Source: Antechinus flavipes
Lineage: Eukaryota
Reading direction: 5' to 3'
Length of the DNA: 64,000 bases
NCBI RefSeq assembly: GCF_016432865.1
Contig: NC_067403.1
Span: 263,748,001-263,812,000, forward strand
A model generated the notes under the pieces. It had not been told where the DNA came from, ran no database searches, and was given only the letters and a program-made list of their open reading frames with translations. Below are positions 54,731-60,082 of this stretch, one piece after another. How positions within the stretch are numbered: the stretch's first letter is position 1; each line of letters opens with the position of its first letter. Position numbers and translations under genes: made by a program.

Positions 54731-54974
54731 CCATAGGGGTCTCCTTGTCCGAGCCTTCCTTCTCTTTCCTTTTCTTTCAGTCTCTGTCTCCTTACCGCCC
54801 TAGCTCAGGCTTCCAGCTTCGGCCTCTATGATTCTGTCTGTCTCGGTCTCGGAGCGTCCGTCTTGCCCGCTTCTCGTCTCTAGCTCCTCCTTCCCCATGC
54901 CCGTTCCCGCCCCTTAGAAAGTCTCCTGCCCTGGATCTCGGATCTCGGGCGCCAGAGCGCGCTGCCCAGCTCCG

Positions 54975-56758
54975 GCCCCTGAGCCCGCGCTCCCTCCTTC
55001 TCAGGCTCCTGAGCCCGCGCTCCTTCCTTCTCAGGCTCCCTGCCTCTGCGCTCCCTCCTTCTCAGGCTCCTGAGCCCCCGCTCCCTCCTCCTCAGGCTCC
55101 CTGCCTCTGCGCTCCCTCCTTCTCAGGCTCCTGAGCCCCCGCTCCCTCCTTCTCAGACCCCTGAGCCCGCGTTCCCTCCTTCTCAGACCCCTGAGCCCGC
55201 GCTCCCTTCTTCTCAGGCTCCTGAGCCTCCGTCCCTCCTCAGGCTCCTGCCTCTGCGCTCCCTCCTTCTCAGGCTCCTGAGCCCCCGCTCCCTCCTCAGA
55301 CCCCTGAGCCCGCGCTCCCTCCTCAGGCTCCTGAGCCCCCGCTCCCTCCTCAGCCCCTGAGCCTCCGCTCCTCCTCAGGCCCCTGAGCCTCCGCTCCTCC
55401 TCAGGCTCCCTGCCTCTGCGCTCCCTCCTTCTCAGGCTCCTGAGCCCGCGCTCCCTCCTCAGGCTCCTGAGCCCCCGCTCCCTCCTTCTCAGGCTCTTGA
55501 GCCTCCGTCCCTCCTCAGCTCCTGCCTCTGCGCTCCCTCCTTCTCAGGCTCCTGAGCCCCCGCTCCCTCCTCAGGCTCCCTGCCTCTGCGCTCCCTCCTT
55601 CTCAGGCTCCTGAGCCCGCGCTCCCTCCTCAGCCCCTGAGCCTCCGCTCCCTCCTCAGGCCCCTGAGCCCGCGCTCCCTCCTTCTCAGATCCCTGAGCCC
55701 GCGCTCGCTCCTTCTCAGACCCCTGAGCCCGCGCTCCCTCCTCAGGCCCCTGAGCCTCCGCTCCCTCCTCAGATCCCTGAGCCCCCGCTCCCTCCTTCTC
55801 AGGCTCCTGAGCCCGCGCTCCCTCCTCAGGCTCCTGAGCCCCCGCTCCCTCCTTCTCAGGCTCCTGAGCCTCCGTCCCTCCTCAGGCTCCTGCCTCTGCG
55901 CTCCCTCCTTCTCAGGCTCCTGAGGCCCCGTTCCCTCCTTCTCATGCTCCCTGCCTCTGCGCTCCCTCCTTCTCAGGCTCCTGAGCCCGCGCTCCCTCCT
56001 CAGGCCCCTGAGCCTCCGCTCCCTCCTCAGGCCCCTGAGCCCGCGCTCCCTCCTTCTCAGATCCCTGAGCCCGCGCTCCCTCCTCAGCTCCTGCCTCTGC
56101 GCTCCTCCTTCTCAGACCCCTGAGCCCGCGCTCCCTCCTTCTCAGATCCCTGAGCCCGCGCTCCCTCCTTCTCAGACCCCTGAGCCCGCGCTCCCTCCTT
56201 CTCAGACCCCTGAGCCCCGCCTCTCTCCTTCTCAGACCCCTGAGCCCGCGCTCCCTCCTTCTCAGGCTCCTGAGCCCCCGTTCCCTCCTTCTCATGCTCC
56301 CTGCCTCTGCGCTCCCTCCTTCTCAGGCTCCTGAGCCCGCGCTCCCTCCTCAGGCCCCTGAGCCTCCGCTCCCTCCTCAAGCCCCTGAGCCCGCGCTCCC
56401 TCCTTCTCAGACCCCTGAGCCCGCGCTCCCTCGTCAGGCCCCTGAGCCTCCGCTCCCTCCTCAGACCCCTGAGCCAGCGCTCCCTCCTTCTCAGACCCCT
56501 GAGCCCCGCCTCTCTCCTTCTCAGATCCCTGAGCCCGCGCTCGCTCCTTCTCAAACCCCTGAGCCCCGCCTCTCTCCTTCTCAGATCCCTGAGCCCGCGC
56601 TCGCTCCTTCTCAGACCCCTGAGCCCGCGCTCCCTCCTCAGGCCCCTGAGCCTCCGCTCCCTCCTCAGACCCCTGAGCCCGCGCTCCCTCCTTCTCAGAC
56701 CCCTGAGCCCCGCCTCTCTCCTTCTCAGACCCCTGAGCCCGCGCTCCCTCCTTCTCAG
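54975..56758. repeat. Large minisatellite, 27-31 bp units (ctcaggctcctgagcccgcgctccctcctt), about 60 copies
   Basis: Direct inspection; copy number estimated from length. Confidence 0.97.
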
Positions 56759-56828
56759 GAGCTCCGAGAGCTCAGCCGTCGGACGTTTCGAATATCCCGT
56801 GTCTCCCGGCGCACAACCCTCAGTCCCC

Positions 56829-56908
56829 ATGGCCAAAGGAGTCGGGGCCCTCGTGATCCTCTTTGCCTTCTTGATCCAAGGATCTTCTTCGCTCCCGGCT
56901 CCTCAGAG
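56829..56908 (+). CDS. SCT: SCT signal-peptide exon
   Basis: [26 protein letters not shown](R): hydrophobic core plus small-residue cleavage region; AG|GTGAAT donor, phase 2. Confidence 0.88.
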
Positions 56909-59181
56909 GTGAATCCTTCCCCTGCATCTTCCCACCCCGGCTCCCCTAGCTGGGTGGCTGGGGATCGGCGGACGCCAACCAGACCTGGGCTCGGGGCTCC
57001 GAGAGAGGGCGGGACTGGGCAGAGGGAGGCCACCCTCCCCTGCTCTTTCCGGGGTGCGTCCTGACCGGAGGATGCTTCGGGTCCGACCAGGGACGGGGAC
57101 ACGGTTAGCAACCGACGCGCTTCCCTCAGACCTCCTGCCGACTTGGCGGGCCCCAGCCGAAGCTCTCGGGTGGAACGTCTGCGGATGGGGATGGTTGGGG
57201 CACTCCTTCTCCCACACCTCCCTGGCTCGGCCTCCTCCCCCCGCCCCTCACAGCCTGTCTCCCGATAGGACTCAGCGCCACATGGACGGCGCCTTCACCA
57301 GCGAGCTGAGTCGCCTGAGGGAGAGCGCTTTCGTCCAGAGCCTGGTCCGCGCGCTGGTCGGCCTGGGGCCCAGGTGAGCGCTTCCCCGGGATGTTGGGGG
57401 AGGGGGAGGGAATCAGAGAACTGGAAGAGGGGCGCGGGGCCGAGCCGGGCCTGACGCAGCTGCCGCCACGCGCCCGCTCCGGCCCCCAGCCCGCTCCGCT
57501 GCCTCCCCAGGACCCAGAGACACTCAGACGGCGCCTTCACCAGCGAGCTCAGTAAAATAAGAGGAAACGCCCAGGTGCACCGCCTTATTCAGCAGCTGGT
57601 GGGTAAGCGCAGGTGAGAGCCGTGAGCGCGTCCGCTCCCACATGCCTTCCCCCAGACAAGTGGCCCCGCCCCACAGACACCCCGAGGTTCAGCGCCCCCC
57701 ATCCCTCAACCCCCCATCCCTACAAGCGCACACTCTCCCTCTAATCACTTCCAGCTATCTGCAGGTCTGTAACACTCCCTTTTCTCTTTGTGGCCGGGAA
57801 GATCAGTCAGAGAGCCGGAGGAGGTGACTGGAAGGAGCGGGGAAAATGGGCCCCTCGCCTCGGCCCAGGACAATTCGCCCTGCCTGAAGTGGCTTCGAAT
57901 GTGCCTCCCACAGAACGGGTAACTGCTCCCCTTTCCTGGAGCGCAAATGGGGCTGCGCGATCCCTCCCCTTTCCTCCCCCGGGCCATCTTGGGAGCGCGG
58001 GCGGTCTGCAGGGCTCCCTGTCCTTTCCGGGGTTTCCGGGCTGGGCCTCTGTCTCCAGGACCAGTGTTCAAGGCCCTCTTGTGACTTCTCAGTGCAGAAC
58101 TTGGAGGGAGATCCCTCGGAAGCAACTGTCTCTGGCAAGTCGCTCCGTGGCCAGAAGCTGAGGCTGAAGGGAAAGGAGCCTCTCCCGGGGAGGGCGCCCA
58201 AAGGCAAAGCGCTCGCTGTCTGACTCAGTAATAAAGGAGCATCTGATACAGAGTCCGGCTCGTGTGATGGAGAGGAGGGGGTTGCGGGGAAGGCGGGGGT
58301 TGGGGGGAGGAGCGTTAGAAACAGGCGGCTCCAGAAGCAGAACGGGGCTGGGAAGCGCAAATCGTTACACTCCCGAGTCCGCAGTCAGACGCCTCCCGAT
58401 CGGTCCTAGCGGAGCCCTCCCCTCACCGAGGGGTCCCTGGGCCGGGGAGGTCGGCTGAAGGGGCGGGGCTGTTCTGGCGGAGGCGCCTCGGGAGGCTCCT
58501 TCGGCCCTGAAACTTGCATCACCCTTGAGGGCCGTCCCCAAGGGCAAGGGCGGCCCTGTGGAGGAAGGAGACTCAGGAAGGGCGCAAGGAAACCAGCGGA
58601 GCTCGGACGTGCTTGAGAAAACTTCCCCTCTCCGGAGGTCATCAAACCAGAGCCCAGACCTGGGGGGGGGGGCTTCCTTGCCGGCCAGGCTAGAGACCCC
58701 AAGTTCTTTTTGCCGTTAGAATTCTGGATTGCCAAGGGATTGGGGGGCTGCTTCCCAAGGGTAGAGCTGGCCAGCCCCAGCTTCCTCCTGCACGGCCCCT
58801 CACTGATCCTGAACCACATCAAAGGTGCCCTAATCCCTTCCTTGCCCGAAACCCCTCCTCTTCCCCGAGGGTTCACTCCCTAGGAGACAACCCGACCCTT
58901 CCCTTTCTCCCTGAAAGCAGCTGCAGCCGCTGTGGATGCTTAGGCTCCCAAGGCTCTACCTCTCGCTGGCCCGGACCGGGGCTTTCTCCCCTTGTCAGTC
59001 CCCTCTCCCCTTGCCAGTCCCTTCTCCCCTTGCCAGTCCCCTCTCCCCTTGCCAGTCCCTTCTCCCCAGACTGCCCAGTCTTTTCTGGGAGATCAGCCCA
59101 CAGAGGCAGAGCTTTGGAAGCAGAGCTGGAAGGGCTCTCAAGAAGCCCAGGTCCCTCTCTTCTCCTGCTCCTGCTTCCTGA
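56829..59181 (+). CDS. SCT: Secretin precursor with two secretin-family peptides, proposed coding span
   Basis: Proposed join 56829-56908, 57269-57373, 57511-57612, 57811(or 57802)-57918, 59070-59181; all introns phase 2; about 168 aa. Divergent from DRD4, as SCT is in human. The last two exons are less secure. Confidence 0.8.
57269..57373 (+). CDS. SCT: SCT peptide exon A (secretin-like peptide)
   Basis: gatag|; (R)[34 protein letters not shown](R); AG|GTGAGC; 105 nt. Confidence 0.9.
57511..57612 (+). CDS. SCT: SCT peptide exon B (27-aa amidated secretin)
   Basis: ccccag|; (R)[33 protein letters not shown]; AG|GTGAGA; 102 nt. Confidence 0.95.
57811..57918 (+). CDS. SCT: SCT C-terminal propeptide exon (predicted)
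   Basis: [35 protein letters not shown] resembles the rodent EN..LA...D.LCLLW segment as recalled; GG|GTAACT donor, phase 2; acceptor ambiguous (57802 or 57811). Confidence 0.6.
58986..59069. repeat. 19 bp tandem repeat x4 plus partial copy (ctccccttgccagtcccct)
   Basis: AG dinucleotides at 58997, 59016, 59035, 59054. Confidence 0.9.
59070..59181 (+). CDS. SCT: SCT terminal exon (tentative)
   Basis: Long pyrimidine tract plus CAG; phase-2 frame [36 protein letters not shown]. An alternative exon at 59327-59360 cannot be excluded. Confidence 0.4.
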
Positions 59182-59924: not shown

Positions 59925-60082
59925 GTGCCAGCGAGGTGGTGCAGTGGACAGAGCACCAGTCCTGGAGTCAGGAGGACCCGAGTTCAAATCTGGCCTCAGA
60001 TACTTCACATTTCCTGGCTTGTGACCCTGGGCAAGCCACTTAACCCCAATGGCCTCAGCAAAAAAAACAACCAAACAAAAAA
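59925..60082 (+). mobile_element. tRNA-derived CORE SINE (WSINE1/SINE1-like) with A-rich tail
   Basis: aggtggtgcagtggacagagcacc (A box), gagttcaaatc (B box), ...cacttaaccccaatggcctcagcaaaaaaaa. Confidence 0.88.

Follow-up and report, generated by a model that had tools for sequence, protein, structure and literature searches.

How did the single hormone exon of placental secretin come to resemble, in different parts, two different exons of a marsupial gene? The question is raised by a stretch of 64,000 nucleotides (nt) from the genome of Antechinus flavipes (NCBI RefSeq assembly GCF_016432865.1, contig NC_067403.1, positions 263,748,001 to 263,812,000 of the forward strand), hereafter called the window, whose own numbering is used throughout. 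It carries a five-exon gene (SCT; 56829-58235, plus strand) for secretin, the first hormone discovered, and this gene contains two tandem hormone exons, designated A and B. An earlier note on this DNA, made from the letters alone, had read human secretin as a chimera of the peptides encoded by A and B, and had suggested that the single placental exon arose by deletion-fusion or by conversion between them. The mosaic look is real at the codon level. However, a chimera is not required to explain it, as parallel change driven by GC content and acting on the orthologue of exon B would account for it about as well.

A secretin gene encoding two peptides

The gene is assigned to SCT on the basis of its match to the annotated secretin of the same species and of an exon structure backed by RNA. 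The coding part of exon 1 (56829-56908), which encodes the signal peptide, is followed by a GT donor at 56909 and is spliced to exon A in RNA (contig X19, record 14); its translation is 100% identical in tblastn to residues 1-27 of P0066, the NCBI model 'secretin isoform X2 [Antechinus flavipes]'. Exon A (57269-57373) is phase-symmetric and encodes TQR and then a peptide of 32 residues, which starts with His1 (57279) and lacks the GKR amidation signal. This peptide is of the SCT-LP type and is the mammalian counterpart of avian SCT-LP. An intron of 137 nt (57374-57510) separates it from exon B (57511-57612), which encodes TQR, a 27-residue secretin proper, of avian type (57521-57601), and GKR (57602-57610). 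Exon 4 (57802-57918) encodes the C-terminal propeptide, and the coding sequence ends in exon 5 (58093-58235) with a stop codon (58229-58231) overlapped by AATAAA (58230-58235), the RNA contig ending at 58236. As read here, exons 4 and 5 reproduce the C-terminus of P0066.

Expression of the gene is documented by Logan contigs from two runs, apparently of RNA, of close relatives (95-99% alike). In these contigs, the joints 56908|57269, 57373|57511, 57612|57802 and 57918|58093 are all of the GT..AG type. Therefore, peptides A and B are both encoded in a single mature messenger RNA (exons 1-A-B-4-5). Both hormone exons fit the glucagon/secretin hormone family (PF00123, Hormone_2), with a His1-x-Asp-Gly-x-Phe-Thr-Ser N-terminus, a length of about 27-32 residues and basic cleavage flanks. 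Furthermore, the orthologous precursors carry precomputed PF00123 assignments, and secretin is the top match among solved structures for both peptide A (E = 3e-6) and peptide B (E = 5e-6). The upstream peptide also displays the characters expected in a gene encoding SCT-LP plus secretin, i.e. a residue other than Ser at position 2, an aromatic residue at position 18, V23, a GL..R end and no amidation signal.

An alternative acceptor, in frame and 21 nt 5' of exon B, is used at 57490 in a single RNA contig of a relative (57373|57490). It puts seven extra residues between peptides A and B, and an identical insertion is found in the Sminthopsis isoform P0069. A UniProt model from the Tasmanian devil (P0011) displays an apparent fused peptide, with A on the 5' side and B on the 3' side, that resembles the placental mosaic. 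It was not accepted as evidence of a fused exon: its junction is compatible with an annotation join between a GT inside A (57333-57334) and an AG inside B (57573-57574), such a joint (57333 to 57573-57574) occurs in none of the RNA contigs, and the NCBI devil model P0067 has full exons A and B.

A search of 1.84 billion proteins with an A+B profile, followed by word searches, revealed two-peptide precursors in ten marsupials (koala, wombat, Petaurus, Trichosurus, tammar, Dromiciops, Antechinus, Tasmanian devil, Sminthopsis and Gracilinanus), in platypus, in turtles and birds (69 precursors matched by one pattern) and in crocodilians, whereas the precursors of placentals, more than 100, are single-peptide. 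The A/B duplication is therefore older than the amniote split and, among these groups, exon A was lost only in placentals. The two-peptide gene is already present in public annotation as ten marsupial models and one platypus model; a literature search found no paper on a two-peptide SCT in mammals, nor any proposing that placental secretin is a mosaic.

The peptides have had different fates in these lineages. In sauropsids, residues 11-13 are S-K-M and residues 16-17 are N-A in both A and B. Exon B of crocodilians and trionychian turtles begins with HADG and not HSDG (Crocodylus locus L009, at 4403 and 6430; P0159, P0160, P0163 and P0165). The platypus precursor (P0047), compared at the protein level, has an intact peptide A and a degenerate peptide B that has lost His1, Phe6 and Thr7 and is probably inactive as a hormone; a protein search started from P0047 found no further relatives. 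Monotremes are known to have lost gastric genes, and the degeneration of platypus B may be connected with this loss. In marsupials, peptide A (P0001, P0002 and P0062-P0069; Met, Val or Thr at position 2) is nearly invariant over about 80 million years and more conserved than B. Such near-invariance suggests that marsupial SCT-LP is probably a working hormone.

Affinities of the placental hormone exon

Human secretin was compared as found in the solved structure PDB 6wi9_P, with its GKR extension taken from P0150; the sequence that the earlier note had used is exactly that of the structure. The residue matches on which the note relied are also correct. Indeed, R12, L13, E15 and Q20 of human secretin match exon A alone, the stretch F6-E15 is the same in peptide A and in human secretin, and S2, R21, Q24 and GKR match exon B alone. 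Among these residues, Q20 is nevertheless uninformative because H20 in B is specific to marsupials while sauropsid B has Q20. The SRLRE motif is not peculiar to Antechinus, as exon A encodes SRLRES without exception in the ten marsupials sampled.

A codon alignment was built from the DNA of Gracilinanus, Dromiciops, Trichosurus, tammar, turtle, crocodile, condor, sloth, golden mole, hyaena and kangaroo rat. At both ends, the placental exon is orthologous to B: it has tcg at codon 2 (S2), acg at codon 5 (T5), cgg at codon 21 (R21), cag at codon 24 (Q24) and gtg at codon 27 (V27), and it ends with G-KR, showing the same one-codon deletion as marsupial B relative to the G-x-KR of sauropsids. Its acceptor (cctccccag) and its codons -3 (gcc) and 10 (ctc) are B-like too. 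Furthermore, it does not have any of the old characters of the A clade (non-Ser2, aromatic 18, V23, GL..R end without amidation signal).

In the middle of the exon, codons 12-16 read cgY ctK cgR gaS agc in four placental orders and cgY ctK mgR gag agY in marsupial A, a match that extends to the nucleotide level (cgc ctg cgg gag agc); exon A of the window has cgc ctg agg gag agc at 57312-57326, i.e. the RLRES block common to placental secretin. The corresponding codons are aaa ata aga gga/ggg/cgg aac/acc/act in Australidelphian B and aaR atg aga gga aaY in sauropsid B (turtle, crocodile and bird). Exon B of the window, with aaa ata aga gga aac (KIRGN) at 57554-57568, retains this ancestral AT-rich block. 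The retention of near-sauropsid codons by Australidelphian B indicates that ancestral therian B had K-M/I-R-G-N/T at positions 12-16, the placental RLRES being a derived state. As Australidelphian B keeps the avian-type SK[IM]RG[NT] block, the difference between birds and placentals in the mid-region postdates the marsupial-placental split. The opposite direction, in which therian B would have had RLRES first and given it to A, was ruled out, since aga gga, as in sauropsids, is still present in Australidelphian B. Judged from these codons, the segments of the placental exon appear in the order B-A-B.

The earlier note had proposed to look for remnants of exon A in placental SCT. None was found by tblastn in four placental loci, each of which gave one significant match of secretin type, and the intron upstream of the secretin exon is only about 80 nt long in sloth, golden mole and hyaena. 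Downstream, 4/4 of these loci have a cadherin gene, and a 7tm_1 gene lies upstream in sloth. The introns flanking the placental exon were also aligned locally with marsupial intron 1, the A-B intron and the post-B intron. About 110 nt of the 163-nt intron that follows the sloth exon (L002) aligned with marsupial A-B introns, with z up to 6 against simple shuffles. However, this likeness was not significant against GC-matched windows of the same locus (fractions 0.03-0.19) and was absent in golden mole; the sole high score of the hyaena intron, against Gracilinanus, was a match between G-runs.

The conflict between segments of the placental exon is real. In partitioned trees made from the codon alignment, a check that the earlier note had called for, its segments group neither all with A nor all with B. 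For the whole exon, maximum likelihood gives a tie between the A and B groupings, with a log-likelihood difference (dlnL) of 2.0, then 0.3 with more taxa, and values of 0.35-0.50 in the approximately unbiased (AU) test; Fitch parsimony on fixed trees requires 178 steps when placentals are grouped with A versus 181 with B, from only 13 informative sites. Added up codon by codon over the whole alignment, dlnL is -8.7 for codons 11-17, which favours A, and +9.0 from codon 18 to the end, which favours B. With the middle set apart as a partition of its own, the rest of the exon favours B (dlnL 5.2, AU 0.11).

The permutation and recombination-type tests are marginal. Triplet permutations of informative sites give p = 0.05 for consensus sequences and 0.01-0.18 over 15 species triplets, and permutations of the per-codon dlnL give p = 0.03 by site and 0.13-0.16 by codon, whereas the Fitch test of the 12-16 block is not significant (p = 0.21-0.36). 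The values thus range from 0.01 to 0.36 depending on the test, and they are confounded by GC heterogeneity and by demonstrated parallelism. Moreover, the block was picked post hoc, the exon is only about 105 nt long, and the stationary HKY model is violated by the differences in GC content.

Parallel change, copying and fusion

GC-biased substitution drives parallel amino-acid change, the codons for F, Y, M, I, N and K being lost in GC-rich regions. Such a process could explain the placental RLRES without any exchange between exons. Marsupial SCT keeps the ancestral amniote arrangement of two exons, A (SCT-LP type) and B (secretin), in one precursor; the single placental exon would be the orthologue of B, exon A having been deleted on the placental stem; and the AT-rich and fast-evolving block (K-M/I-R/N-G/E-N) would have been driven independently to the same GC-rich conservative state in placental B and in marsupial A. 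We regard parallel GC-driven substitution on the B orthologue as the most likely explanation of the placental block, and give it an even chance.

No part of ancestral B is as rich in AT as codons 12-16, with 67% AT in Australidelphian B versus 36% elsewhere. The changes from B to the placental exon comprise 16 AT-to-GC versus 2 GC-to-AT substitutions, and a similar bias is found in Gracilinanus B (14 versus 3) and in marsupial A (32 versus 6). Over a range of exon GC content of 0.46 to 0.75, F/Y/M/I/N/K residues become rarer with increasing GC, from 10 in turtle to 2 in placentals and in Gracilinanus B. The latter, an undoubted B orthologue whose GC content at third codon positions (GC3) reaches 1.00, reads SRLRDV, and its mid-block is 6-8 nt from placental exons versus 12-13 nt from its own orthologues. 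Its R12 is encoded by AGG, one step from AAG, the codon in its own exon A being CGC. Likewise, platypus B has L13 and E15, whereas platypus A has V13 and Q15, and some variants of bird B have E15 or D15. The Gracilinanus, platypus and bird sequences show that K>R, M/I>L and G>E/D recur in B in the absence of a donor, and we infer that the placental block would have arisen by the same parallel route.

Several observations weigh against this explanation. At positions 12-16, the placental ancestor has the same five residues as marsupial A, and the codons agree at 13-15 of 15 nt, with full agreement for Hyaena versus Gracilinanus A. Two features, S16 and CGY at codon 12, are specific to the pair formed by placentals and marsupial A. 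CGY is found in 4/4 placental orders and in all marsupial A exons, and lies two or three changes away from AAR, unlike the AGG of Gracilinanus B. As for S16, it is only one of several GC-richer replacements of N, which became T, V, H or Q in other B lineages. For the exact coincidence of four residues, a rough estimate from a substitution matrix is about 2e-4, on the condition of change at all four sites, a value that is too pessimistic under GC drive. The mid partition alone rejects the grouping with B (dlnL 14.2, AU 0.005), this segment having been chosen after seeing the data. The change of G15 to E or D opposes the GC direction and needs added selection or site-specific toggling; position 15 would then be a recurrently toggling site. 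Lastly, the tract 'cat gca gat gg' is found in both hormone exons of the crocodile. This sequence, at the extreme 5' end of the Crocodylus exons, is a candidate A-to-B micro-conversion and suggests that such events can occur.

Many of these points would be expected from a short-tract conversion, the part of the earlier note's proposal that survives, in our view as a possible but doubtful explanation. Stem-placental B would have received from A a patch of about 15-35 nt (codons ~11 to 16/17), seeded by the near-identical codons 3-11, and A would then have been deleted. The identity of RLRES, of most of its nucleotides and of the CGY codon, the opposite dlnL sums on either side of codon 17, the rejection of B by the mid partition and the lower p values of the triplet permutations all speak for such a patch. 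Furthermore, A and B are separated by only 123-151 nt, and the crocodile tract suggests that patches of such size may occur in SCT. However, the block was delimited post hoc, the conservative tests (Fitch and codon permutation) are not significant and the likelihoods come from a stationary model that the GC differences violate. Since AT content in B is highest in this block, GC drive in any case predicts a clustering of A-like sites there, and the R, L and E/D states were attained in Gracilinanus B and platypus B without copying of A. Codon 10 of the placental exon (ctc) is still B-like, and the timing of a conversion requires that the donor motif was present in exon A by the therian stem, whereas platypus A lacks RLRES.

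A deletion-fusion, the other mechanism that the earlier note had suggested, is very improbable. An unequal crossover or a deletion between A and B would leave a single exon, derived from A on its 5' side and from B on its 3' side. It would thus explain in one step the loss of A and the presence of a single secretin-type exon in each of the four placental loci, which contain no exon-A remnant and, upstream, an intron of about 80 nt, and it would place an A-like block 5' of a B-like 3' half. However, the polarity of the 5' end is wrong, as tcg, acg, gcc (codon -3), ctc (codon 10) and the acceptor of the placental exon are B-like, where A has atg/gtg, gcc, gct/act and ctg. A single crossover, from which an A-type 5' end is expected, therefore does not fit the B-A-B order, and about six further replacements would be needed versus four for a conversion patch. 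That placental secretin is the orthologue of exon A, exon B having been lost, is just as hard to believe: whole-exon trees cannot reject it, the Fitch count is slightly in its favour and the sloth downstream intron weakly resembles the marsupial A-B intron, but the placental exon has the B-type G-KR end and lacks every A-clade character older than the mammal-sauropsid split, and the intron likeness is non-significant, absent in golden mole and due to a G-run in hyaena.

The earlier note had also held that inter-exon conversion homogenised the 5' halves of A and B. Its starting observations are exact: the 23-nt identical run occurs exactly twice, at 57285-57307 (codons 3-10 of exon A) and 57527-57549 (codons 3-10 of exon B), with 0 occurrences expected in shuffles, and the 3' parts are far more different than the 5' parts (18/44 nt versus 7/42 nt). 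However, the interpretation does not hold. Over codons -3 to 11, A and B differ by 7-12 nt within species and by 10.4 nt between species, so that paralogues from one species are no closer than paralogues from different species, whereas orthologues differ by 4-5 nt (A-A 4.8, B-B 4.0). In tammar and possum, 5-6 of 9-10 codons compared among codons 1-11 show synonymous differences between A and B. Exon A of tammar and of Trichosurus share the synonymous codons ggt and aca, both of which are missing from their own B exons, and A5 is encoded by gcg in tammar B, not by the gcc of exon A. Outside dasyurids, the longest run identical between A and B is 8-16 nt; the 23-nt run is specific to the dasyurid lineage and is the product of only two changes in dasyurid B (gat>gac and acc>gcc). 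The likeness of the 5' halves is therefore not due to ongoing conversion or concerted evolution; it results from purifying selection on the receptor-activating N-terminus and from GC3 codon bias, with at most one tiny conversion event.

Two repeated elements were observed on either side of the gene. A 30-bp minisatellite of about 62 copies (54970-56759; consensus CTCAGGCCCCTGAGCCCGCGCTCCCTCCTT) ends about 70 nt 5' of the SCT start codon, and DNA contigs of the source species fragment at this minisatellite. The sequence at 59930-60000 of the window (…gagttcaaatctggcctcaga) is presumably a short interspersed element derived from a transfer RNA and of marsupial type.

Comparison with known systems

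Chicken and other avian SCT genes encode SCT-LP and secretin in one precursor, according to Wang et al. (2012, Mol Cell Endocrinol 348:270, pmid 21939730) as cited in PMC12714231, and the latter describes mammalian SCT as having lost the second peptide. The gene described here resembles avian SCT in its two tandem secretin-type exons contributing to one precursor, the upstream peptide lacking Ser2 and GKR and the downstream peptide being secretin, and marsupial B keeps the avian SK[MI]RG[NT]AQV middle. It differs in being found in a mammal and in its peptide A, since marsupial A has T7, R12, L13, R14 and S16, unlike sauropsid A. The two-peptide arrangement, which predates the amniote split, thus persists in marsupials and, with a degenerate B, in platypus.

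Placental secretin (human and pig; 6wi9_P and P0150) has both ends in common with exon B and is identical to exon A from F6 to E15. The difference lies in the gene, which has one hormone exon in placentals, with no room for exon A and no trace of it in four placental loci. The middle of Australidelphian secretin is still 'avian', and the placental middle is a late derived state identical to that of marsupial SCT-LP. Whether this state arose by copying or by parallel change bears on which residues tune the binding of secretin to its receptor. If a conversion occurred, which we regard as unlikely, human secretin would combine two ancestral hormones in mosaic form, and its mid-region, where it diverges from bird secretin, would bear the trace of a sister peptide since lost.

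Segments of a short duplicated exon that conflict in a spatially clustered manner are also a feature of inter-exon conversion or concerted evolution. The SCT exons differ from concerted evolution in that A and B of one species resemble each other no more than A and B taken from different species. With GC-biased parallel change, they share the excess of AT-to-GC substitutions, the fall of F/Y/M/I/N/K residues with rising GC content and replacements recurring in independent lineages. They also provide a warning: in a short AT-rich block, parallel change driven by GC content can mimic the signal of recombination.

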